Source of the DNA: Macrostomum lignano
Lineage: Eukaryota
Assembly: GCA_002269645.1 (NCBI GenBank)
Contig: NIVC01001581.1
Location: forward strand, 201,533 to 265,532
Direction: 5' to 3'
DNA: 64,000 bases
In this document: positions 3,553 to 61,855 of the stretch, one piece after another
Position numbering within the stretch: the stretch's first letter is position 1
How the letters are laid out: each line of letters opens with the position of its first letter
Made by a program: the position numbers and the translations under genes
The notes under the pieces: model-generated
Database searches by the model: none
What the model was told of the DNA's origin: nothing
The model's input: only the letters and a program-made list of their open reading frames with translations

Positions 3553-4303
3553 ATGTCGGCCGAATTCCAAGTGGGTCTTCTTGGTTGCTTCAACGATTGC
3601 GGTAATAATCTTATTAAGTTAATTATTTTATAAGTATGATTTCTTAATCTCATTCAACTAAGCCATTCGGAAGAAGAAAGCTATACACACAGAATTTTTT
3701 GTTTAATTGCACACATTCGCGTAGATTAAGACTGGAGGCTACGATTGAGGTGGTTTAGCTGCAATGTACGCACTCGCGCTAATAGTTAATTGCTCGCGTA
3801 GATTTAGTCCAGGGCTGTGATTGAACTGGTTTAACTGCAATGTACGCACTCGCGCTAGTCAATTGTTCGCGTAGATTAAGACTGGGGGGACTGTGATTGA
3901 AGTGGTTTAGCTGCAATGTACGCACTCGCGCTAGTCAATTGTTCGCGTAAAGTTAGGTCCGAAAGCTGGTTTGAACTGTCATGTACACTCGCGCAGACCC
4001 GTTTTTTACTTGCTCATTATAGGCCTTTGCGTCCTGACCTACTTTGTTCCTTGCTATACTTTCGGCAAGAACGCGGAAGCCGTTGGGGAGAACTGCATCC
4101 TGTGCGGCTTCGGGATCTGCTGCGGTCTAGGCTTCATTCTGGGTCCGATCGTGCGCGGAAAAATTCGCGAGAAGCAAAATATTCCTGGCAGCTTCATCAC
4201 TGACTATTGCATCTGGTTTTTCTGTGCATTCTGCGCCTTGGTGCAGGAGGCTCAGGAGGTAAAAAGCTTCGGCGGATACGGCATGGCTGTCGAGAGAGAG
4301 TAA
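3553..4303 (+). CDS. PLAC8: PLAC8/cornifelin-family Cys-rich protein, copy 1
   Basis: Exons 3553-3601 (MSAEFQVGLLGCFNDC) and 4023-4303 with a phase-1 GT-AG intron. Translation continues GLCVLTYFVPCYTFGKNAEAVGE...RGKIREKQNIPGS...CAFCALVQEAQEV...ERE*, the PLAC8 pattern (GL-x-x-C-x-x-D-C ... PC ... CALxQE). Confidence 0.92.
3745..3995 (+). repeat. 76-bp tandem repeat (x3 plus a partial unit) in the PLAC8 copy 1 intron
   Basis: gcaatgtacgcactcgcgcta recurs at 3761, 3837 and 3913. Confidence 0.85.
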
Positions 4304-5446: not shown

Positions 5447-6958
<1,512 letters not shown>

Positions 6959-7249: not shown

Positions 7250-8299
7250 ATGAATGTGCCGACAAAAGAGTTTCAGCACGGCCTGTGCGGCTGCCTGGAT
7301 GACTGCTGTAAGCTCGCACATTTACCTTTAGATTACAATTACAATTAGATGTATAGATTGATGTCTAGATACACAATTAGATATATACTCGTAGATTGGT
7401 GTCTAGACACACAGTTAGATATATAGATTGGTGTCTAGATACACAACTAGACAGATAGATGATCTAGATATATATCGGTGTCTAGACACACAATTAGATA
7501 TATAGATCCGTGTCTAGATACACAATTGGATATATATTGGTGTCTAGACACACAATTGGATATATAGATTGGTATCTAGATACACAATTGGATATATATC
7601 GGTGTCTAGACACACAATTGGATATATAGATTGATGTCTAGATACACAATTAGATATATCGATCGGTGTCTAGATGCACAATTAGATATATAGATTGGTG
7701 TCTAGATGCACAATTATATATATAGATTGGTGTCTAGATGCACAATTGGATATATAGATTGGTGTTTAGATGCACAATTAGATATATAGATTGGTGTCTA
7801 GATGCACAATTAGATATATAGATCGGTGTCTAGATGCACAATCGGATATATAGATTGGTGTCTAGATAGATCCCCAATTACGAGTACAGGTAAATGCCTG
7901 GCTTTATGCCTAGGTGAATGTTTAGACATAGAGATAAATGCATGTAGATTTCTATTAATAGCTACATGTAGATCTAAACACATCCCTGAAGCAACTGCAC
8001 CCCAATGCGGGCCCGCAGCCATCTGCATCATCACCTATTTCTGCCCCTGCTACACCTTCGGCCGCAACGCTGAGGCTGTTGGCAGCAGCTGCTGCCTCTG
8101 CGGCCTCGGCCTCATTCTCGGCTTCGGCTGCATCATCGGGCCGATGATTCGCGGAAAAATTCGCGAGCGTCAGGGCATCGATGGCAGCTTTTGTAAGGAC
8201 TGGTGCATCTGGCTCTTCTGCGGCTTCTGCGCTCTCGTGCAGGAGGCTCAGGAGGTCAAATCCTTCGCCATCAGGGCTCAAAGCATCGAGCGAGAATAA
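7250..8299 (+). CDS. PLAC8: PLAC8/cornifelin-family protein, copy 2
   Basis: Exons 7250-7307 (MNVPTKEFQHGLCGCLDDC) and 8019-8299, with the same phase-1 intron as copy 1. Translation continues SICIITYFCPCYTFGRNAEAVGS...CALVQEAQEVKSF...ERE*. Confidence 0.92.
7345..7870 (+). repeat. ~32-bp minisatellite (tatatagattggtgtctagatacacaattaga) in the PLAC8 copy 2 intron
   Basis: Visible tandem units. Confidence 0.9.
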
Positions 8300-9707: not shown

Positions 9708-10049
9708 GTGAAGTCATGTCACATGAATCATGTGAAAGGACTTTAATTTAAACTGCGTTTAGCACAGGAGAATGTAATTAAATCCAAAAACCTTTTGAAC
9801 CAAGAAAAACAGAAAATTTACCTGAGATAGCATCATAGCACCTTTGAACTACTTGACTGCATTAAACAACAAACGAGTGCAGTTGGCCATTTTATCCCCA
9901 AATCCTCTTTAATTAGTGTCGTCAAAACTCCATTGGCTGAGATGCGACACCAGGACGCCAGGGCAAGAGTCTATAAAATGAGCACTTTGATCAATCATGC
10001 ATTGTTGCCCTGCGAGCCAACTTCTGTAATGCGATATTCAAAAGTCATC

Positions 10050-10666
10050 ATGTCTACAGCTACAGATACAAGCTTAAACATTACCATAGCAACCAGTGAT
10101 CGAGTTTTAAGCGAAGTAACAGCGAATCTATTCATAGCCTGGCTAAGCGTAGCCATGGCGATTGGCGTCGTTAGCAACCTGATAGTCTTAGCAACGATTC
10201 TGACCTCCAAGAGCTCGTCAATTCGCACTGCCAGTGGATTTGCATTCGTGGCAAATCAGGCCATTGTAGACCTGCTGGTGCTGGTCATTGCTGCTCCCGA
10301 GATTGCAGTCTGCTTGTCGCGCGACTGTCTCTTCGAGCTGGGAGGCAGCGCTGGAATGCCAGGTTGCCAGGCGCTGGGATTCGCTGTGATGCAGTTGCTG
10401 GAGTGCAGCCTGTGCGGCACCGCTCTGCAGGCTGTCAGTCGCTACCTGCTGATTGCTGGCAGCGCTGGCGGCGGGCAGCGGACGTTCCTGAAAGTGTTCG
10501 GCAGTCGTCGGGCTCTGGCTGGTTGGCTGGCCGCGGTCTGGTTGCTGCCGGCTGGGCTTGCAGCGCCTCCCCTGCTGGGATTCGGGAGGTTCGATCTGCT
10601 TTGTGTCCTGTTTGTGTGGGGAGTTCTTAGCTGAACTACTGATGGGGAATCGCGTTGAGGGATAGC

Positions 10667-10749
<83 letters not shown>

Positions 10750-11757
10750 GAGACAGAGAGAGAGGTAAGGATAGTGGTAGGTGACGGACAGAGGTAGACA
10801 AGGATAGAGAGAGGTTGCGATAGTGGTAGGTGACAGAGATAGAGAAGGACAGAGAGAGGTTGGGATAGTGGTAGTGATGGAGGTAGACAAGGATAGAGAG
10901 AGAGAGGTAGGGATATTGGTAGGTGACGAACGGAGGTAGACAGGGATAGAGAGAGAGGTAGGGATAATGATAACTGATGGAGGTAGACAAGGATAGCGAG
11001 AGGTAGGTAGCTTGGATATTGGTAGTTGGTAGGTGACGGAGGTAGACAAGAATAGAGAGAGAGGTAGGGATAGTGGTAGGTGACGGAGGTAGACAAGGAT
11101 AGAGAGAGAGGTAGGGATAGTGGTAGGTGACGGAAGTAAACAAGGATAGAGAGAGAAAGGTAGGGATAGTGAGTTGACAGAGGTAGACAAGGATAGAGAG
11201 AGACGTAGAGATGTGGAGAGGCAGAGAATCGATAGAAAGAGAAGACCACGGTGAAGCAACTCCAGTAAAGAATATCTAACAAGCAGAACGCCGAAAATTC
11301 ATACAGGTACGCGTACAACTCAGCATTCGGCACCTGCTTGTTCGCCTGGGCAGACAAACTGAGCTACTATTACGTACTGGTATTCGGCTGTCTGGCCGTC
11401 GGTTTGCCCTCAATCGCGACTTCCCTCGGTAGCTATGTGGGGATTTTCCTCACGTTCCATCGGTCCAGAATGAGATCGATGGAAACTGGAAATAATGCTT
11501 CATCAAACGAATCCAGTCGTCTAGCCCGCAGTCTGTTCGTCACCTGGTGCTGCTTTCTAATTCTGTGGGGTCCGGTGATTCTGGTCACCCTGATTGGCGG
11601 TCTGGGGCAGCCTGCTGTACCTGTGCCTGTTACCCGAGCTCTGTTTCTCATGGCCCTCAGCAACAGCGCCGCTAATCCGGCTATTCTGCTGGCGATGAAC
11701 AGCAGACTGAGAGACGAATTCTTAGCGCTGATCGGCCGGTCAGGGACTGCACGATGA
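10050..11757 (+). CDS. Orphan rhodopsin-like (class A) GPCR, loosely melatonin-receptor-like, ~329 aa
   Basis: Exons 10050-10588 and 11307-11757 with a phase-2 intron join as ...LLGFGR|YAYNSAFGTCLF. Seven hydrophobic segments; TM1 SN, TM2 NQAIVD, TM3 Cys and SRY, TM4 W, ECL2 Cys, TM6 WGP, TM7 NSAANPAIL; N-glycosylation site NIT. The start codon choice is uncertain. Confidence 0.85.
10660..11215 (+). repeat. (GA)n plus compound purine-rich minisatellite filling the GPCR intron
   Basis: Visible repeats. Confidence 0.9.
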
Positions 11758-16074: not shown

Positions 16075-18359
16075 TCAAAACTCGATGAAGTCCTCCGGCT
16101 GGTCAGCGTAGAACTCGTTGGCCTCGTCCTCGAATCCGGGCATGTCGATCCCGCTGGCGGCTCGCTCGCCGTTCAGAAGCATCTGTTTCATCATGCGGTC
16201 CATGCGGTCCATCTCGCGGTTCATCTCGCGGAAGACTCGTTCGGTGCCGGGCACGGTAGCGGAGGCGGCCATCACGCTAGACGGGGCCAGGTCCCACAGC
16301 TCGCCGCTGGTGTAGCACATCCTGCTGCCGTCCTTGCCGACATCGTCAGCTCGAATCCAGTACATCATGTAGAAGTTGCACATCTCGTCCTTCTGGGTAG
16401 CGCCGATGCTCACGTCCTTGTCGCCGGTGTTCTCCATGACGCACTTGGCCGCCAGCATGTCGCCAGGCCTGATGACGCCGCTGCCGTTCACTGGGTAGAA
16501 CATCTGGGGCATCTGCGGATTGGCCGAACCGATGAGGCTCCAGTGGCCGTCGCGAACGCGGTAGCCGCTCACCACGCGACCGTGGCTGTGGGTGTGCGTG
16601 CGGAAAGCGAACGGGTGCAGTGTGGTCTGGCCGTCGTAACTGCAGCTCGTCTCCATGTGCGTCACCGAGTGCGCCGGGATAACACCGTCAGTTAGTGAGA
16701 TGTGCACACCGCCGAGTTTCGGCGACGGAGTCGTCTGGTAGGTCATTTTCACGCCGGAGTTGTCCTTCAGGCTGGGGTTCTTGACGAAATCGGAGGCCTG
16801 CGTTTGGGGAGAGGTTGATTTTTTCTCATATTTGATGTCTCTCTTATCTCTGAATAGTGTTCCTCCACGATATTTGATGTGTCCCTCTACGATCTTGATG
16901 TGTCCCTATACGATCTTTGATGTGTCCCTCTACGATCTTGATGTGTCCCTATACGATCTTTGATGTGTCCCTCTACGATCTTGATGTGTCCCTATACGAT
17001 CTTTGATGTGTTCCTCTACGATCTTGATGTGTTTCTCTACGATATTGATGTGTTTCTCTACGATATTGATGTGTTTCTCTACGATATTTGATGTGTCCTT
17101 CTACGATCCTTGATGCGTCCCTCTACGATCTTTGATGCGTCCCTCTACGATCTTTGATGTGTCCCTCTACGATCTTGAGGTGTCCCTCTACGATCTTGGA
17201 TGTGTCCCTCTACATCCTTGATGCGTCCCTCTACGATCTTTGATGCGTCCCTATACGATCTTTGATGCGTCCCTCTACGATCTTTGATGCGTCCCTCTAC
17301 GATCTTTGATGCGTCCCTCTACGATCTTTGATGCGTCCCTCTACGATCTTTGATGCGTCCCTCTACGATCTTTGATGCGTCCCTCTACGATCTTGGATGT
17401 GTCCCTCTACGATCTTTGATGTGTCCCTCTACGATCTTGGATGTGTCCCTCTACATCCTTGATGCGTCCCTCTACGATCTTTGATGCGTCCCTCTACGAT
17501 CTTTGATGCGTCCCTCTACGATCTTTGATGCGTCCCTCTACGATCTTGGATGTGTCCCTCTACGATCTTGGATGTGTCCCTCTACGATCTTGATGTGTCC
17601 CTCTACGATCTTGATGTGTCCCTCTACGATCTTGGATGTGTCCCTCTACATCCTTGATGCGTCCCTCTACGATCTTTGATGCGTCCCTCTACGATCTTTG
17701 ATGCGTCCCTCTACGATCTTTGATGCGTCCCTCTACGATCTTGGATGTGTCCCTCTACGATCTTGATATTTCTCTACTCAGATTTTATCTTTTCTCTTTG
17801 ATGTTTGTCTTTACGATTTTCGACTTCTGCTTTCTAACGTCGAATAGCATTATAAATTCAAAAGACTTACCTTCTTATAGTGCACCTGCACGACTAGCCA
17901 GGGCAGGTCAAAGCCGGGCCCAACGCCAAAAGTCACACCGTCGGGCAGCTGCAAAGCCGGAGCGTCCATGGCGTAGGCGTAGATGATGCGGGTGTCGCTG
18001 GCGCACTGAGGCGCCTGCTTGTAGGTTTTATCACCGGCAGCTCCCTCCGACTTGGTGAGCATCTCGCCGCAGTTCCAGACTTTCTCGGTGGCCGAGCCGG
18101 GCTCCTTGCAGGCGGTCAGGATGATGTGGTGAGCGTGTCCGGACTGATGCTGCGGATTGAAGGCCCGGATGTAGCGGTTCTTGTCGAGTTTCACAGCCGT
18201 GCACAGGTAGGTGTCCTCCTGCTTGGGCGACACGCCCGGCATCAAAAGGTCCATGACGTTGCTGTCGCTGGCGGCCGGTGCCGAAGCCACCGAGGTCAGC
18301 ACCAGCGGCATCGCCAGCAGCGAGCACACGGCCGCAATGTTCACTAGTAGAGGCGTCAT
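16075..18359 (-). CDS. PHM: Peptidylglycine alpha-hydroxylating monooxygenase (monofunctional PHM), ~403 aa
   Basis: Exons 18359-17871 and 16797-16075 with a phase-0 intron. Signal peptide; CuH ligands GHAHHIIL and VQVHY; CuM ligands RTHTHSHG and DEMCNFY; PQMFYPV motif. The stop comes with no PAL or TM domain. A probable 5'UTR intron lies at 18528-18378. Confidence 0.95.
16860..17765 (+). repeat. ~22-bp minisatellite (ctacgatctttgatgcgtccct) in the PHM intron
   Basis: Visible tandem units. Confidence 0.95.
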
Positions 18360-19091
18360 GCGCAAGGTACTCGGCCTCTGTAATATGTTGGACCGTGTGT
18401 GTAATGTCAGATAAGTGCTGCAGTGTATAGAGTTTATACAGTCGTATTTATCTTTAACTGTAGCGTCTTATCAGCTGACTCTATAGACAGATATATTCCT
18501 ACATGCGCTCGCGAGATTAAAAGCTTACCTTCTAAAAACTTTACGTTCAAGTTCCGACTTCAGCAGTAGGAAACAATCGGAGCGGTAGGTGCGCGCTGTG
18601 CTCTCAGGCAGAAACCTATGCAGTCGGTTTCAGCTGAAAAATTTCGGAATTGAATTAAGCAGCGGATAAGCGAAGGGAAGGGGAATTCCTGGTGCAGCGG
18701 CTTTTGTGGATTTTGCGCTAGGCGGGGTTGGCTCGGGTGGAGAGGATGCTTGCACAGCGTAGGCCTCTTCGACAGTGAGGAGCTCCCAGTATTGAGAGAG
18801 AGGGGAGAAGCACTGAGTGAGCTCCTTCTCCTTTGCCTCCTGCATCCCAGCCCAGCTTCCCAAATCTCTCCCCAGCCTCAGATCGATAAATTTCTCTTAT
18901 CTCGGGGATGTGGGGGGAGAAGGGAGGAGCTGCAACTGCAGGGACTTCCGCCGACGGCGGGAGGGCAGGGACGGGGGCGATTGACACGAACGGCCTTAGT
19001 AGCATGGGAGAACTTCGCCTGATCGGGATGGGATGGGAAGACTTGGGAATTGAGGATGAGAATGGAATGAGGAAGGCTGTTCTCCTCTCGG

Positions 19092-20222: not shown

Positions 20223-23200
20223 TTACAGCTCGCTTTCCTGTAACTCAGGTGTTATCTCTTCATACCCGCCGCCAGCTTGCCTTTCATTTTCGGCTTCGTT
20301 TGAAGTTGCCGCCGCAGACGCCGCCGCCAACTCTTGATCGTTTGAAGTTGCCGCCGCAGACGCCGCCGCCAACTCTTGATCGTTTGAAGTTGCCGCCGCA
20401 GACGCCGCCGCCAACTCTTGATCGTTTGAAGTTGCCGCCGCAGACGCCGCCGCCAACTCTTGATCGTTTGAAGTTGCCGCCGCAGACGCCGCCGCCAACT
20501 CTTGATCGTTTGAAGTTGCCGCCGCAGACGCCGCCGCCAACTCTTGATCGTTTGAAGTTGCCGCCGCAGACGCCGCCGCCAACTCTTGATCGTTTGAAGT
20601 TGCCGCCGCCCGATGCTCCACAAGCCGTTTCGGCGGCAGCGGCGGCGCCCTGAACACTGGCGGCGACTCGCGACCGATCACGTTGTTGTAGGTGTCCTCA
20701 TTGCCGTTTCTAGGCAGCGACTGCACCTGATTTATTATGACAGTATCACTAGTAATCTTAGGTCCCGTTGGCAACAAATAAAGCTAAAATCTCTTCTATA
20801 AAAAAGTTTTTAACGCAAGAAGCCTTGTAAAATTACCATTGTTGTTTCTTAGAAATTAGAAAAGGCGTCAAGTTAGCTCGTATCTTGTCTAAGACATCCG
20901 CATCTCCATTGAGTCATGGCATCTCAGCAACTCCCCATTGAGCCAATTGGCATCTCAGCAACTCCCCATTGAGCCAATTGGCATCTCAGCAACTCCCCAT
21001 TGAGCCAATTGGCATCTCAGCAACTCCCCATTGAGCCAATTGGCATCTCAGCAACTCCCCATTGAGCCATGGCATCTCAGCAACCCCCCATTGAGCCAAC
21101 TGGCATCTCAGCAACTCCCCATTGAGCCAATTGGCATCTCAGCAACTCCCCATTGAGCCAATTGGCATCTCAGCAACTCCCCATTGAGCCAATTGGCATC
21201 TCAGCAACTCCCCATTGAGCCAATTGGCATCTCAGCAACTCACCATTGAGCCAATTGGCACCTCAGCAACTCCCCATTGAGCCATGGCATCTCAGCAACT
21301 CCCCATTGAGTCAATTGGCATCTCAGCAACTCCCCATTGAGCCATGGCATCTCAGCAACTCCCCATTGAGCCAATTGGCATCTCAGCAACTCCCCATTGA
21401 GTCAATTGGCATCTCAGCAACTGAACCTTAAAGCTCTCACAAGAATTTGGTTACTTGCTCAACTATAATTTCTAATTTGTTTTGGGCTAAGTGAGACACA
21501 GTCAAATCAAAACACAAACCTTGGCATATTGCGCCTCGGCGTCCTCATACGGACAATCTGCTCCAGAACCGATGTGCAAGCCGGCAACGGAGTAAGCGTA
21601 CGAGGCATTGTCAATGCTGATCGCTGACGAGTGCCCTGTTCGGTTCGATTGAGTCAGATGGTCAACGCTACGACCCTCGGCGGCTTGGTGACGACGGCTC
21701 CTGATCAACCGGTAGGCAAAGAAGACCACCACGGCAGCAATGGCCAGCAGCAGAGCGGGCACAAGCAGCCCGACCAGCAATCGGTTGTTATTGGCAGCTG
21801 ACAGTTCCGCTTCCGTCTGGTAGCGCGAGGTACAATTGACACCGGACCAGCCGATGGTGCACAGACAGGTGAAACTGCCGTGCAGGTTGCGGCATACCTG
21901 ACTGCCGTCGGTTTTGCAGGGTCTGTCTGTACTGGCTGAGCACTCGTCGATGTCCTGCTCACAACGGGGTCCGCTAAATCCTTTTGCGCACTGACAGGTG
22001 AAGTTACCTGAGAAAGAAATTGATGCTTGATCTGAGTGGTCCAAGAAGTTTTATCTAGGTACTTTTTCCGCCACTGTTACAACACTTTGCAGGTGATTTT
22101 GAGGCTACATGTTTCATGTTGTTGCATCGACTTGCGGTAGGTTTCTGAGGCTACATGTTGTTCATTGACTTGCTGGAGTTTTCTGAGGCTACATGTTGTT
22201 CATTGACTTGCTGGAGTTTTCTGAGGCTACATGTTGTTCATTGACTTGCTGGAGTTTTCTGAGGCTACATGTTGTTCATTCACTTGCTGGAGTTTTCTGA
22301 GGCTTCTTGTTTTGTGTTGGTGCATCGACTTGCAGTAGGTTTCTGAGGCTACATGTTTCATGTTGCTGCATCGACTTGCGGGAGGCTTCTGAGGCCACAT
22401 GGTGAATGATTTTTGTACAATTCTGAGCCTATATGCTACACTACCTTCGTATGTACATGCATTTATTTAAAATCTAGTTTTCATCAGGTTTGCATTAGCC
22501 TACCTGGAGGCGAGTTCACACAGGTGCCACCATTGAAGCAAGCGTTGGTGAGTTTGCATTCGTCAACATCCTCAGTGCAGTTTTTCCCCGTCCATCCAGC
22601 CAAGCAGTGGCAGCTGTAGGTGCCAAACTGGTTGCGACAGGCGCTGGCATGTTGGCAAACTGGCGGCGAGGCCGCGCACTCATCGATGTCCGACTCGCAG
22701 AAGGTGCCGTTGAACCCGGCGGAGCAGCTGCAACCTCCGGCGCCTGTGCCGGGAATGCAGGTACCGTTGTTGCGACACGGAGTATCCGGCGAGTCGCAGG
22801 CTGACAGTTTTGTCTCGCATGTTGGGCCTAATTTTAGGCGAAGTATTAGAAAATCAGCTCAAATGCCATTGTGCTACTATCAGTAATATGCATCAAAGTT
22901 GCTCACCTCCCCACAGACCGACGCATTCGCAAGCGAATCCCGAGTCCAAGTTGGCGCACGTGCCGCTATTTTTGCAGGGAGTTCGGCTGGCACAGTAGGT
23001 CTGACGGCACGAGCTGACTGGATCGTAGGCTGCAGAATCATTAAGTTGTAGTAATGATATTTTATGTAATTTGTGCGTGCTCACAGATTCTAGTGTGGTG
23101 ATAAAGCCCCTGGTGCTAAAGCCAATGGTGCTAAAGTACATGGTGCAAAAGCCCTTGGTGATAAAGCCCCTGGTGCTAAAACCTCTGGTGATAAAGCTCC

Positions 23201-28204: not shown

Positions 28205-28642
<438 letters not shown>

Positions 28643-29351
28643 TTTTAATAAATATAATGCGCATTAAAAGGCTATGAATCCTACTAAGTGTAAGTAATAC
28701 ATCTTGTATCCGACGCTATTATATTTTAATGCAGAAAGAAATATTAAAGTATAAACTAAGCGCATTCAACGAAAATTTCTGACTTTTTTGTTGAGTCTTA
28801 TTGAAATACTCTAAAGAAAATTGAATATCATAATGCTGGTACTGATTAGCAAGAACGCATCCCGATCGCCACGAGGAAAAAATTCACAACTCCGCTACAA
28901 GGCATTAAGACCAGAATCTTTATCTTAAAAAAACACAGAGTGAAAAACTGACCTAAACTCAGTGAGCAGCGAGAGGGTTAGACCGTGCCAAGCGAGTGAG
29001 CACTTGCTAGATTCTGATGAATAGCGAGCAAGGTTGAGAAATTGAAAACGGACTGACAGAGAGAGGCTCAGGTCGGGCAGAGAGGAGAGAACAGAGGCGA
29101 GAAGGCGAAGGTGCGTCAGGTGGCCGAGCGCACAGAAAATACCAGGGCAAGTACGCATACTGGCTGGCAGCAAAAAACGCACGGACTGGTCTAATTGATG
29201 ATAGAAAAATGAAGTGTAAAGCGCTGCAAAGCGAGGTGCCAACCTTGATAAGTTGAGCTTCAGGTATAGTGTGCCAATGCAGTCCGGGGGCATTGAGCCA
29301 TAGGAATTATGATTTTCTAGCTAATCAAAATAGCATCATCAAATCTTTGTC

Positions 29352-50458
<21,107 letters not shown>

Positions 50459-51654
50459 ATCAGTAGGCCAGCTTTTTACCCTCAATTGTTAAACTTGCAT
50501 GCCAAATTAAAGTCAATCCGACCCAATCAAGCTGATAAAGTTCGCAGTGATTAAAAAACTCATATTAGTAACTTAAAATCATACAGAGCTTCTATAACTT
50601 ATGAAACATTTCATGCATCCTCGCTACTACTATGACCAGTAGTTTATCTAACTCCCTGACAGTTTTTATTATACATTTACAGTAGAAGTCGAGGGTAAAC
50701 AATGTTTTTAAAACCAGGCGTCTTCCTTTACTATTATTTAACCATATCTGTGTACTGTTTCAAATTTGGTTTTGTAAATGTTTTCTACTTGCTGAATCGT
50801 ACTTCCACGATTGATTTCGAATTCTTATCGATTATGAGTTTGTTTTAACCAATCGAATTGTAGCTTAAGTATATTAGAAACAAAAGTTTTAACAAAAAAA
50901 TTGACAGTAGAAAATTGTCTGATAAATAAAAAATTATCTCGACCTGGCCTCCTTTCTGCGCTGCTAGAGATTCGTACATCTTGAATTTTGATACTGGCTT
51001 AATTTTAGTCATTAATACTCCTAATTTTACTGCATGCACTAGTTTTCTCTTGCTGGGTCAACGATTTAACCATTTTCTACCCCCAACTGCTCCTTATTGG
51101 CTGGCTCGACTTTCCTATCTTTCCTATTCCCAACTGTTCCCTAATTGGCTGGCTCAACTTTCCAATATTTTCCTACCCCTAACTGATCCCTAATTGGCTG
51201 GCTCAACTTTCCAATATTTTCCTACCCCTAACTGATTGGCTGGCGCTCGTACTTCCTCTGAATCTTGACTCTTGCATCTCTAATAGATTTATTAGTTGCT
51301 TTATTTTAGTACATAAATTGACAATTTCTGTGTAATCTTATCGCCTTTGAAAATATTATTACAACATTTCTGAAGCAGTTGACTATATAAGTTAGTTCAA
51401 AATACAAAAAAACACGCAATTGATACAAATTTCGCTGGAGACAGGATTTTTATTGCAAAGCAATCATCCAAACGTATTAGCGAGAAAAAACTTTTCCGTT
51501 TTATAGGAATCTCAAGGTGATCGGTGTGTTTAGCTGAAATTTTATGAACAGGCTGAAATGATATGTAATCATGCTTAAGTGAGGTTTCAGTGCAATGCAT
51601 TTTACCTGGTATTGTAAAAGTCTTTCATATTTTTTTGAAAAAAAAACGGTTTCC

Positions 51655-52160: not shown

Positions 52161-53775
52161 TCAACAATCGTTAGTTGGCTGAAAGTTGGCTACCTTCCAG
52201 TACATGACGCCGAAACACAGGGCGGTCATGACGCAGGATGCCGTGCCGACGACTCGTTCAACAACGCTAGCGGCCACGTGCCACTGGACTGCGCGCAGCT
52301 GGTTCAGCCAGTCGATCCGTCCAGAGTCTCGCAGAAACTGACGCGACGCTTGCAAAATCTGGCGCTCTTTAGCTTCGAGCAGATCACGCGGCTGCTCGCT
52401 AGACGAAGCTGCCTGACGCAGAAGTTCGACTTCATCCTCGGAGTCTAACTCGTTGATTTTGGAGCGCTCTACGTAGCGACGGTAATTGGCTAGGCTGGTG
52501 AGTTCTCGCTCTGACAGGACGGGGGATGAGAGAATCTGTTTGTCCAGCCAATCAGCAAACAGCTGGGGTAGAGAAAGTGGCTGTTGGTTCAGCCAGCCAA
52601 GATAATCAGCAATTCAGCATGGGTTAGAGATACTCTGTTGAGCCAGCCAATCAGCGAATAGCTGGGGTGAGAGAGAGCCTTTGTTTCGCTAGCCAATCAG
52701 CGTCCAGCTTTAGACAGAAGGAGACTCTGTTGGGCGACAAGCACAAGTATAAATATAATTAAATACTCAAAATAGCGTACCTCCGCACGCAATGATAATG
52801 CGTTTAAGCAGTCCCGACGGCCGATGCCGATAGCTGACCAGTTTCAGCGACATCACCGACGAAGCCGTTGCTACGCTGGCGTTGACCATCCCCATAGCAA
52901 CCAGCGAGCTTAGTATAGCAACAGAATCCGATGTAGTTGGCAACTTGTTAACCAACAGAGTAGAATAGATAGAGAATGTAGTCATCATGCTCATGCAGAA
53001 CGTGACCTTCTCCCCGGAGCTGAACGGCACCCAGTAAGAGAAAAAGGTCACGCAGATGAAGACCAGAGTTGGCAGGGCAACATTTACCAAATAGAAGACA
53101 GAGTGCCTGCGCATGCAGATGTACACGATCACTTCGCTGAACGCGTTCGCTAGCAGAGGGTAGCTGGTGAGGTTTCTGCCCAGCCAGACTCGAGTGACAT
53201 TCCATTCTCCGTGCTGGATGCTGAACTCTTTCAGCACCGGCTTCATGCTGGGATGGACCCGGAGGTCCAGCTGGGACATGTCGTAGGTCCAGCTGGCGAA
53301 TTTCAGGCTGCAGAGCTGCCTGGGATAGAATATAATAGAATAGAACACAATAGAATAGAATAAAATAGAATAGGAAAAACTAAAATAGGAATCTACCTAT
53401 CAAAAGGGAACAGAGTCAGATCCACAGCGCAGTGGCTCTTTGAAGTGACGGCGGGCATCCATTTAATCGTACCGTTGCTGCTGATTGACACCGAAATATC
53501 GGTGGGAAAATACCCCACATAGTCTCCGGCTGTGTTCCGCTCCTGCCAATGGCCAGGTTGAATTGCTGGCTGTTAACTGACTGACTGACTGACTGACTGA
53601 CTGACTGACTGACTGACTGACTGACTGACTGACTGACTGACTGACTGACTGACTGACTGACTGACTGACTGACTGACTGACTGACTGACTGACTGACTGA
53701 CTGACTGACTGACTGACTGACTGACTGACTGACTGACTGACTGACTGACTGACTGACTGACTGACTGACTGACTG

Positions 53776-53818
<43 letters not shown>

Positions 53819-54249
53819 ATCTAACTAACTGACTCACTAACTAACTAACTCACATCAAAGCCAAGAATCTGTGTCAGCGATGCAGCAAAGTACACTATGA
53901 CAGGCACAGACGCATTGTACACGGGCCTCGAGTCCGGGGTGCAGGACTCTCTGATCATGTCGAACACCGTGTGCTCATAGTTCATGTGGCCGCCGCTGCC
54001 GCCTCCGCTAGCCGTGAGGTTCACCTCGTTAGTTGCAGCTTCATCGTCCCAGCATCCGTTGGCTGATGACGAAGCGCCGAAAATTTGGCGTCTCTGCTGT
54101 TCCAGCAGCCGCTGCCTCATTAGCAGTCTCTGCTGCTGCTGTCGCTGCAGCTGCCTGAGTCGATGATGCTGAGGGCTTGCCCAGCCTCCGTGCTGCATCA
54201 ACACGCATGCTATGAGCAGCAGCAGAAGCGGCAACTGTTTTGTTTCCAT
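52161..54249 (-). CDS. Divergent nicotinic-acetylcholine-receptor-like Cys-loop channel subunit (non-alpha), ~476 aa as assembled
   Basis: Exons 54249-53854, 53542-53397, 53319-52781 and 52510-52161 (phases 0, 2, 1). Signal peptide; RPVYNAS; Cys-loop CAVDLTLFPFDRQLC; loop B FASWTYD; EWNV; no vicinal CC in loop C; M1 YLVNVALPT; SGEK M2; M3; M4 QWHVAASVVERVV. Confidence 0.9.
53575..53850 (+). repeat. Compound (CTGA)n/(CTTA)n/(CTAA)n microsatellite filling intron 1 of the channel gene
   Basis: Visible. Confidence 0.95.
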
Positions 54250-57767: not shown

Positions 57768-58310
<543 letters not shown>

Positions 58311-58749
58311 GGGAAACATGTAGACAGTAGTTTTTAGCAAGAAATTCGATAAATTTCAACATGCTTAATTTACTTTTCTTGACTACTTCTGCAAAGCTAC
58401 TATAAGTAGAGTGTTCAGCGCCAGACCGAAGAGAACGTTTATCGAATTTGTTTTTCTGCTTAGCAACTGTGTTTTAATGGGACTCTCGCTCACGCCTGTT
58501 GCGCTTTTACGAGTACTGTGCCATTATTGCAGCTGTTGTGCAGTCCTAATTGCAGAAGTATTTTGGCTTTATAGGATGGAGGATTCAATCAGCGGGGATT
58601 TTAAAAGAGTCGCAGCTGCTAAGCTTGTGCAGCTAATACACGGATTAGATTAGAAAGCCGGAAGCATGCGTTGAATAGTTGCCCGATTTAGTTAGAAACT
58701 GTCTCTTGTTTTTTGTGTAAAAACGGACTTGATGAAAAATTTACAACTA

Positions 58750-59347: not shown

Positions 59348-60606
59348 TTAGGGTGAGCCAAAAGTTTCCGGAATTTGAACAATTTAAAACTATAACAAAT
59401 AGTGTCAAGAACAAACAGTTTATAGCGATGTGATGTAGTTGCCATTCAAGGCCCTGACCCTCTCCCATCTTGCTGGCAATGCCTCAATCCCCTCCCTCCA
59501 GAAGCTCGCAGGCTTTGAATCAATCCATTTCTGCACTGCCTGCTCCACATGTTGCTTGTTGGCGAACCGCTGTCCATCACAAAAGCTCTGGAGAGACCTG
59601 AACACATGATAGTCGCATGGCGAGAGGTCTGGTGAGTATGGTGGGTGGGGCAAAACACTGTAGCCCAGGCTTGCCAGCTTGGCCTGGGTGAGTCTTGCTT
59701 TGTGAAGCCGCGCAATGTCGAAGAGGAGCACCTTGTCGCGGTGCCCCGGGCACACGGATCGCAGCAAACGGGCGATCTGCTCCAGTTCGCTGCAGATCAC
59801 CTCCGCGTTCACAGCCATGCCATGCGGGATGACCTCCCAGAAAACAGGGCCAGACGAGCAGAACCAGAGAGAGAGCAGCTCCTTGCCGCAGTGGGCGTTC
59901 CGCATTGGGCAGCTGGGTGGTTCTTCAGAAGCATCGACCCAGACGGCTGATGTGCTTGGGTTCTCATAGCAGACCCACTTCTCGTCTTGAGCGATTATCG
60001 ACTTGAGAAAGTTTGGCGAACCGGCATAGCGAAGATTCGAAGTTGCCACATCCACCCTGGCTCTCAGCTGCTGAGGTGTCAGCTCATGGGGCACCAGAGT
60101 TGGCTTCTTCGGCACCTTGTCCGCAGCATGCAGGCTCCGCCGGACCGTGCCACAGGACACCCCAGTAGCGGCTGACAACGCTGTAGTCCGGAGTGTCCTC
60201 AAGGGCTTGGAGAACGGCATCGCCATCAGCAGCAGGGGGTCGGCCTGACCTCGGCTTGTCCTTCAGCTCATAGTTCTCCTCAGCAAAGCGAGAGAACCAC
60301 TCGTACACCGACGACTTTGAGGGTGCATGTGGGCCCATCAGCTGCAACAACTCGCGATGTGCCTCGGCTGCTTTGCGTCCCGCATGAAAGTGGCTGAGCA
60401 GAATTGCTCGCCATTCAGTTCTTGGCAGTTCCATTGGATGCGTTTGCTGGCTTAAGTAGGCAGGGTCTGGGAAACTGAGCGATGTTAAGCTAAAGAGTGA
60501 TGATAAGGCTGGCCAACAGCATAGTAGATGGTTGCTGCTTTTAAGCTTTTCCATAGACAAAAATTAACTAAAAGTTCGATTCTAAAAAACTTTTGGCTCA
60601 CCCTAA
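59348..60606 (-). mobile_element. Mariner (DD34D) transposon, full length 1259 bp
   Basis: TA|ttagggtgagccaaaagttt ... aaacttttggctcaccctaa|TA, i.e. TIRs with a TA TSD; the transposase lies inside. Confidence 0.95.
59420..60434 (-). pseudogene. Mariner transposase with a single frameshift (~60200)
   Basis: ATG 60434 gives MELPRTEWRAILL...VYEWFSRF...LKDKPRSGRP (HTH). A second frame gives LVPHELT, AQDEKW, LFDIARLH and HPPYSPDLSPCDYHVF, with 34 residues between the 2nd and 3rd Asp. Confidence 0.9.
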
Positions 60607-61319
60607 TATCTTTGGAGTGGCATTATCTGGGAGCGCCAGGTTGGAGGCGCCACCTGAGGGCAGTTATTAGTTTCCAATCCAATTGAAGAGACTATCTAAA
60701 CTAGAAGTCCATGACTGTCACACATTCAATGCAACTACAATACCGTAGTTGCATGCGGGCGGAGGCCATGAGAGGAGCGATATGAGAGATCGAGGAAGTG
60801 AAATCGGCTTGGCCTGCAGTTCTTTCAAATCCTCAATAATCATATTTGGCGGGCCAATAGTTAAAGAAACCCAAAGCAGCAATGCTTTGCGAGAAGAAGA
60901 GAGTATTAAACACTTAGAAGTTTATCAGCCTATGAAGCGGTTGGTTAATTTCTTTTAACACCCCGGGCAATATCTTTTTCTCTGTGTCCCAGCCATTGCT
61001 GCGGTTTGGCTTTTTGTCATAATTTGTGAAAGTGTTTATTGCCATTTTTTTACGACCAAGCCTGGCAGACGGCCGCTAAGTTAGTGCCTTCTTTTTTACT
61101 CCACTGAGCCGCTCCGCGACTGCAGGCGTGTTGGCATTTACTCAATAAGTTTCGCTTAAGCTCGGTTTATTTTCCCTTTTAAGAGGCCGACAGTTTCAAT
61201 AGTTATAAGCTCACAGAGCCTCCACAATTATATTTTATTTGCAAGTCGCTTTCTCCTGCGAAGCTTGGCGTAATTTTGTAGACTGAAAGCATTTGCATAT
61301 CTCAAAACTGAATTTACTA

Positions 61320-61855
<536 letters not shown>

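Follow-up and report, generated by a model that had tools for sequence, protein, structure and literature searches.

A probable 141-nt in-frame deletion in the ligand-binding domain of a divergent nicotinic acetylcholine receptor-like gene of Macrostomum lignano

A Cys-loop receptor gene is encoded on the minus strand of contig NIVC01001581.1 of Macrostomum lignano (GenBank assembly GCA_002269645.1), in the stretch of 64,000 nucleotides (nt) between positions 201,533 and 265,532, hereafter called the window. Its product, the channel protein, is of the nicotinic acetylcholine receptor (nAChR) type and lacks 47 residues in the core of the extracellular domain. The best explanation, to which we assign a probability of roughly 55%, is a genuine in-frame deletion of 141 nt in a divergent, lineage-specific nAChR-like gene, the product of which is most likely a recent relic or else a non-binding subunit. 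A canonical agonist-gated receptor is excluded, because the deleted segment, together with drift at near-invariant sites including the linker Pro, leaves no canonical agonist site on either face and no normal coupling interface.

All coordinates are positions in the window. The channel gene was read on the minus strand and splice combinations were compared. It consists of four exons (54249..52161, minus strand) with 476 codons and a coding sequence of 1431 nt ending in a single terminal stop; the frame is free of internal stops and frameshifts across the 1431 nt and all introns are GT-AG. The parts of the gene are as follows.

Exon 1, 54249..53854, minus strand: 396 nt, 132 codons, from the start codon to TQILGFD in phase 0 (translation); signal peptide METKQLPLLLLLIACVLMQHGGWA, a Gln/Arg-rich low-complexity stretch, the α1 helix and the β1 strand.
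Intron 1, 53853..53543, minus strand: 311 nt, GTGAGT...TTGGCAG.
Microsatellite in intron 1, 53576..53850: (ACTG)68.8 on the plus strand with 97% matches (Tandem Repeats Finder).
Exon 2, 53542..53397, minus strand: 146 nt; ERN followed by TAGDYVGYFPTDISVSISSNGTIKWMPAVTSKSHC; β5-β6, the first Cys-loop Cys and FPFD; ends in phase 2 in the Arg181 codon.
Proposed deletion junction, 53531..53536, minus strand: between Asn135 (AAC, 53536-53534) and Thr136 (ACA, 53533-53531); unique non-repetitive DNA, 9 nt into exon 2.
Intron 2, 53396..53320, minus strand: 77 nt, GTAGAT..CCCAG, mostly (ATAGA)n; within the Cys-loop, at a position unseen in the mapped relatives.
Exon 3, 53319..52781, minus strand: 539 nt; second Cys-loop Cys, loop B Trp191, loop C, M1, M2, the M2-M3 linker and M3.
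Intron 3, 52780..52511, minus strand: 270 nt, GTACGC..GTCAG; three copies of a repeat of about 48 nt with the core GCCAGCCAATYAG.
Exon 4, 52510..52161, minus strand: 350 nt including the stop; cytoplasmic loop, pre-M4 motif QWHVAASVVERV, M4 and TGA (52163-52161).

A first-pass annotation of this DNA had exon 1 end in TQILGFD and exon 2 begin with ERNTAGDY, separated by an intron of 311 bp, and all three points are confirmed in the sequence and its translation. The 3' codons of exon 1 are ACA CAG ATT CTT GGC TTT GAT (TQILGFD) and the 5' codons of exon 2 are GAG CGG AAC ACA GCC GGA GAC TAT (ERNTAGDY). Of the 311 bases of intron 1, 275 belong to the tetranucleotide array, and the other 36 nt flank it, 3 on the 5' side and 33 on the 3' side. 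Read in the sense of the gene the array is (GTNA)n, with a few GTTA/GTGA units, about 10 GTAA and about 55 GTCA, followed by the unique 33-nt tail TTAACAGCCAGCAATTCAACCTGGCCATTGGCAG. Two further features of the locus are recorded here. The Gln/Arg-rich low-complexity stretch HHRLRQLQRQQQQRLLMRQRLLEQQRRQ (54090-54180, minus strand, residues 24-55), located between the signal peptide and α1, has no counterpart in the aligned relatives. The repeat of about 48 nt found three times in intron 3 (52528-52714) recurs as four inverted copies just 3' of the gene (51072-51245), so that the last exon is flanked by inverted arrays of it; there are 12 matches in the window as compared to 1.0 expected.

The shortfall of the extracellular domain became evident in several ways. 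Pfam detected Neur_chan_LBD in the channel protein (2.7e-25) over profile positions 103-215 of 216 only, i.e. the complete β-sandwich is not present. In phmmer comparison with the PDB, channel residues 106-136 align to residues 25-55 of human α4; residue 136 corresponds to α4 55 and residue 151 to α4 116, which leaves 15 residues in the channel protein versus 61 in α4. An exhaustive search of 1.84 billion representative proteins yielded 8797 matches to the channel protein with a top identity of 38%. In the 150 best of these 8797 relatives the β1 segment and the segment following the gap were anchored separately, resulting in 90 anchor pairs. The spacing exceeded that of the channel protein by 44-50 residues in 84 of the 90 pairs (mode 46-47), and the difference was zero in none. 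Two cases of shorter spacing were examined (P0164, P0147); both are visibly mis-spliced models in which β2 is still present. The shortfall is far beyond chance.

From the relatives a 47-residue consensus of the lost piece was recovered. WxPD, the Trp of loop D and the Tyr of loop A (Y in LYN) all lie in it, and it includes two near-invariant Trp. In nAChR and acetylcholine-binding protein structures this piece corresponds to β2 with the loop D Trp, the β2-β3 loop, β3, and the WxPD/loop A strand up to its Tyr. The phmmer spacing, the anchor pairs and the recovered consensus alike thus support the statement of the first-pass annotation that some 47 residues, with the loop D Trp and the WxPD/loop A segment among them, are absent. 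A fast MAFFT alignment had placed YFPTD of exon 2 on the WxPD columns; this placement was rejected, since the collinear arrangement TAGDY..FPT..SSNG versus NADDY..MPT..SSDG matches far more positions and keeps the Cys-loop spacing.

The lost piece is not hidden elsewhere in the window. A profile hidden Markov model (HMM) of the piece, built from 79 relatives and run with filters off against all stop-to-stop fragments of at least 10 residues, found nothing in the six frames of the 64 kb; the top match (E 0.65) lies within a tandem repeat at 63.6 kb. The frame contiguous with exon 2 runs into a TAA 10 codons upstream of the intron 1 acceptor. The claim that intron 1 cannot conceal an exon holds, the intron being nearly all microsatellite and the profile search of the window empty.

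To locate the break, the exon structures of five spiralian relatives were mapped on their own genomic DNA. Capitella (P0041) encodes the lost piece in one exon of 155 nt, which comprises DEKN...LYN plus 2 nt and runs from phase 0 to phase 2. Lottia (P0017), Sinanodonta (P0013) and Dreissena (P0170) encode it as 45 + 110 nt, an arrangement which we take to be that of vertebrate exons 3 and 4. Rotaria (P0161) has the 45 nt, followed by a larger fused exon from which the downstream intron is gone. A phase-0 intron directly before the D of DE(K/R)N is present in five of the five mapped relatives. In the channel gene exon 1 closes with this D, exon 2 opens with the codons for ERN, and TAGDY follows without an intron; alignment to the relatives equates TAGDY with the NADDY motif after LYN.

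Against the profile of 79 relatives the β1 segment of the channel protein scores 19.6 bits (E 3.8e-8), with an alignment that is continuous through QILGFDERN, i.e. across the exon boundary D/ERN. E-R-N reaches +9.9 bits when set on the E-K-N columns as against -0.7 bits for L-Y-N, a difference of 10.6 bits. Because ERN is the EKN that precedes the lost piece, the break falls between Asn135 and Thr136, inside exon 2. The lost length of 141 nt equals 155 nt minus 12 nt (DERN) minus the 2 nt which complete Thr136, that is 47 codons. The scores and the HMM alignment favour the case put conditionally in the first-pass annotation, namely an Asn-to-Asn, in-frame loss within an exon if ERN equals EKN. 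As the lost piece is a discrete 155-nt unit in the relatives, "inside an exon" is true only of the remodelled structure of this gene. The five mapped relatives have no intron at the position of any of the three in the channel gene, which in turn lacks three introns common to most or all of the five (x/DEKN, the phase-2 intron at LYN and the phase-1 intron at PLI in M3).

Membership in the nAChR family is clear from the remainder of the protein. Neur_chan_memb (PF02932) was detected at 3.7e-8 (34.3 bits, cut-off 28.1), and the best PDB sequence matches are human α4, α3 and α7 nAChR (1e-31 to 4e-33, phmmer). An AlphaFold2 (AF2) model, computed with an alignment of 65 relatives, has a mean predicted local distance difference test (pLDDT) score of 84, with 60-77 around the junction; since AF2 with an alignment is no test of folding stability, the model was given no weight for or against function. 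With this model Foldseek found nAChR chains as best matches (template modelling score about 0.7). The model shows helices at 167-190, 196-219 and 229-256 plus a long C-terminal helix, and the four transmembrane helices M1-M4 are present. The Cys-loop is C170-AVDLTLFPFDRQL-C184, with 13 residues between its two Cys and with the F/Y-P-F/Y-D core; both Cys as well as F, P, F, D and Q fall on columns conserved in 83-91 of 91 relatives. The cation-selectivity signature is likewise present, with Glu284 at M2 -1' in G-E-K (Glu in 89 of the 91).

The best-matching named relatives are nAChR-like proteins of bivalves, annelids, cephalopods, a gastropod and rotifers, with 24-38% identity. Two word-indexed protein searches returned one Owenia match at 22% identity and nothing closer. 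In tblastn the channel protein matched only its own gene in the window, which thus holds a single copy and no paralogue or partner gene. By sequence, the channel gene is best described as a divergent, lone and fast-evolving member of a spiralian-type nAChR-like expansion, its closest relatives being spiralian. Among the best-scoring relatives, P0002 (Mactra antiquata), P0003 (Tegillarca granosa) and P0006 are annotated proteins of 580-1075 residues with two to four partial nAChR-like units in tandem, which resemble tandem arrays fused into single gene models.

Outside the gap, the alignment with 91 relatives revealed departures at the following sites.

M2 9', Thr294 (52982-52980): Leu in 83 of 91 relatives, Thr in 0 of 91.
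M2 13', Ile: Val in 79 of 91.
M2 16', Thr301: Leu in 58 of 91.
M2 20', Asn305: Glu or Asp in 79 of 91.
M2-M3 linker, Ala315: near-invariant Pro in the relatives.
Loop C tip, Leu236-Leu237: Cys-Cys in 76 of 91; the vicinal Cys of α-type subunits are not present.

The loop C without cysteines and the polar gate of the first-pass annotation are thereby established. The aromatic box is incomplete: Trp191 (loop B) and Tyr234 (loop C) are kept, Phe241 occupies the second position of loop C, and the Tyr of loop A and the Trp of loop D belong to the deleted segment. Both Cys-loop Cys, FPFD and the -1' Glu are unchanged, as are the Trp of loop B, the first Tyr of loop C, the Pro of M1 and the pre-M4 motif, the consensus of which among the relatives is EWxxxAxVxDR. 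Thirty-four columns are conserved in at least 85% of the relatives. Five of these lie in the deleted segment, and on a recount the channel protein matches 23 of the other 29. The median match of the relatives over all 34 columns is 97%, which leaves the channel protein at the extreme low end of the range. Of the six mismatched columns, five are in M2 or the M2-M3 linker, i.e. in the pore and the coupling interface.

The simplest history of the gene would be an intron-remodelled copy in which exons 2-5 had become continuous, followed by the 141-nt in-frame deletion, which may have arisen by microhomology or slippage at the two Asn codons. Such a deletion would join the Asn of D-E-(K/R)-N at the end of β1 directly to the residue after L-Y-N. 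It would remove β2, β3, the loop between them and the WxPD/loop A strand, hence the loop D Trp of the complementary face and the loop A Tyr of the principal face. One side of the β1-β2 loop, which contacts the M2-M3 linker and couples binding to the pore, would be lost as well. The likeliest present state would be a young relic, with a still-open frame, in a rapidly turning-over gene family. As to pseudogene features, stops, frameshifts and lost splice sites are absent, but 47 core codons are gone and the protein has drifted at 6 of the 29 conserved columns that lie outside the gap. If translated and folded, the product may be a non-binding subunit which co-assembles with, or retains, full-length partners, as does human dupα7 (CHRFAM7A).

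Several observations weigh against a deletion in a decaying copy. Intron 1 lies one codon (3 nt) downstream of the otherwise universal x/DEKN site (five of five relatives), and the deletion is just 9 nt from the repeat-filled intron 1; a simple one-step deletion fails to account for these two placements. One complex repair event, or birth of the intron from the (GTNA)n array, is conceivable as their cause, the GTAAGT and CAG units of the array resembling splice signals. A repair footprint was sought as short repeats at the ends of intron 1 and amounted to just a 3-nt GAG, which is not significant. Furthermore, the frame is open over 1431 nt and the loss is exactly in frame, which is equally expected of a tolerated or selected variant. 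Finally, no orthologue or paralogue with more than 38% identity to the channel protein was found among the protein collections searched.

A tolerated or selected variant leads to the most viable of the alternatives, which we nevertheless regard as unlikely, namely a functional, neofunctionalised subunit whose short ectodomain would fold and reach the membrane, acting as a leak or constitutive cation channel or gated from a non-orthosteric site. In its favour, the frame is open, the loss is exactly in frame, and the signal peptide, Cys-loop, loop B Trp, -1' Glu, M1-M4 and pre-M4 motif have survived. Mutagenesis of α7 and muscle receptors has established that a polar residue at 9' promotes opening. 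The channel protein has polar residues at both 9' and 16', which would do the same, and its 9' Thr is unique among the 91 relatives. The AF2 model of the remainder is confident, and orphan nAChR-like receptors that ignore acetylcholine (ACh) are present in annelids and cephalopods (PMC10338036). However, the known orphan and chemotactile receptors have a complete β-sandwich, while here two strands of the inner sheet and the WxPD core are gone, as are the β1-β2 coupling loop and the M2-M3 Pro. AF2 confidence obtained with an alignment does not test stability and dips at the junction (pLDDT 60-77), and no relative of the same architecture is among the 150 best of the 8797 matches. The ACh-independent channel or dominant modulatory subunit proposed in the first-pass annotation would at this stage be speculation, and a relic is at least as likely. 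Rather improbable is the specific version in which the signal peptide and β1 are kept and β2-β4 gone from a "pruned" subunit that is expressed, folds with its smaller ectodomain and either conducts without an orthosteric agonist, aided by the polar 9'/16' pore, or tunes full-length partners, its intron 1 having been born beside the deletion from a tetranucleotide array whose units carried GT and CAG signals.

Still less probable is a real loss of one or more whole exons by recombination or slippage between microsatellites of the flanking introns, with ERN being a diverged LYN and intron 1 a fused, repeat-filled intron. Intron 1 is indeed nearly entirely one array whose units provide GT and CAG signals, and the lost piece is close to one ancestral exon unit. 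This reading nevertheless requires both flanking introns to be at non-ancestral positions (D/E and V/L) and E-R to stand at the strongly conserved L-Y, where the chance of E-[KR] is about 0.008 from background frequencies; the profile difference of 10.6 bits also speaks against ERN being LYN.

We give little credence to an assembly or haplotype artefact, in which the exon or exons for the 47 residues would have been located between two similar microsatellite arrays that the assembler collapsed. The junction of exon 1 and exon 2 does fall at a 275-nt tetranucleotide array, and in the relatives the lost piece is a discrete exon unit whose bounding introns are near these points. However, the lost residues map to unique DNA 9 nt inside exon 2 and not to the intron, which disfavours the exon lost in assembly at the satellite that the first-pass annotation had offered as its alternative. 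With an exon put back into intron 1 the protein would read D-[X]-ERN, and ERN is a poor match to the LYN columns (-0.7 versus +9.9 bits). Moreover, the ancestral 155-nt unit spans phase 0 to phase 2, and dropping it would shift the frame, yet the frame is kept. The window contains no N, and the assembly resolves a perfect (ATAG)378 array of 1512 nt, one of seven tetranucleotide arrays in the window; collapse of the 275-nt array is unlikely because this far longer one was resolved.

The least probable reading is a wrong gene model, in which intron 1 is retained (GFDVS-stop, a fragment of 134 residues) or another acceptor is used, e.g. AACAG/CCA: the acceptor of intron 1 has a weak polypyrimidine tract, the repeat supplies many GT and CAG sites and an in-frame alternative acceptor exists 27 nt upstream of exon 2, but the donor GTGAGT conforms to the consensus, a plausible branch point, TTAAC, precedes the acceptor by about 30 nt, and no splice alternative brings back any lost motif, the 47 residues being absent regardless. 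The alternative acceptor itself was rejected, as it adds PAIQPGHWQ, which is unlike the lost motif, and TAA shuts the frame just upstream.

Comparison with known systems places an in-frame deletion in a turning-over gene in context. In molluscs, nAChR expansions are intron-poor and contain retrocopies in which one or two novel introns arose later (Jiao et al. 2019, PMC6896357). Many of the expanded genes have little or no expression or are truncated, Cys-loop-less or pseudogene-like, and some of their ligand-binding domains are defective (PMC6896357). The channel gene resembles these lophotrochozoan lineage-specific nAChR-like genes (PMC6896357) in its few introns, all at non-ancestral positions, and in the absence of ACh-site signatures. 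It differs from them in being a single copy in the window instead of a tandem array and in its identity of at most 38% to the collections. A clean internal loss of β2-β4 with an intact remainder is not described in PMC6896357.

Human dupα7 (CHRFAM7A) is a partial CHRNA7 duplicate without exons 1-4, and a dupα7-containing entry, 9qto, is among the PDB sequence matches. The segment lost in the channel gene would equal vertebrate exons 3 and 4 (45 + 110 nt), a structure conserved in Lottia, Sinanodonta and Dreissena. Like dupα7, the channel protein lacks part of the agonist site and the β1-β2 loop and has the Cys-loop and all transmembrane segments. Unlike the channel gene, which keeps its own signal peptide, α1 and β1, dupα7 has lost all three and carries foreign FAM7A sequence. 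Lacking part of the binding site and the β1-β2 loop, dupα7 is dominant negative, is largely retained in the endoplasmic reticulum and lowers α7 currents (PMC8998457). It has a known full-length partner, whereas none is known for the channel protein, and the two origins are independent. Alpo4 and the cephalopod chemotactile receptors (PMC10338036) likewise belong to an nAChR-like branch with a loop C devoid of vicinal Cys, ACh not being their agonist; an Alpo-type entry, 8bx5, is among the PDB matches. Unlike the channel protein, these receptors retain all ten strands of the ectodomain together with loops A and D, and they bind other ligands in the orthosteric pocket (PMC10338036), half of which is deleted in the channel protein.

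The surrounding DNA is rich in repeats. Tandem repeats make up 36% of the window in 56 arrays (e.g. 5447-6958, 28206-28643, 57768-58311, 61318-61855), and most of its non-coding DNA, the three introns of the channel gene among it, consists of such repeats, so that the array of intron 1 is ordinary here. Other coding regions of the window are the following.

16075-16752 and 17850-18365, minus strand: peptidylglycine α-hydroxylating monooxygenase (PHM) exons with the N- and C-terminal Cu2_monooxygen domains.
59420-60560, minus strand: Mariner/Mos1-type transposase in two overlapping open reading frames (ORFs), with HTH_48 in 60084-60560 and Transposase_1/DDE_3 in 59420-60226.
3971-4303, plus strand: coding piece.
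7826-8299, plus strand: coding piece.
9933-11757, plus strand: coding piece.
21502-22044, minus strand: coding piece.
39091-42479, plus strand: coding piece.

The PHM gene has a best identity of 52-55% in a collection of 5.8 billion clusters. The transposase copy is probably frameshifted and dead. The five remaining coding pieces include two PLAC8-family ORFs, a rhodopsin-type G protein-coupled receptor with a GA-rich stretch full of repeats between its two halves, an EGF_CA plus transmembrane exon, and a series of I-set immunoglobulin exons with one ORF of 707 codons.

For annotation, the channel gene is a warning that an intact frame and a strong Pfam match can mask the loss of half of the binding site. 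It may also be of interest for intron gain, since a repeat-filled intron lies a single codon away from a deeply conserved intron site, with the deletion 9 nt away. If the short subunit proved to be expressed and active, it would reveal how far the ligand-binding sandwich of a pentameric channel can be reduced with assembly still possible, and it would be an invertebrate counterpart of human dupα7 of independent origin. Mainly, the locus is an example of turnover in a fast-expanding receptor family.

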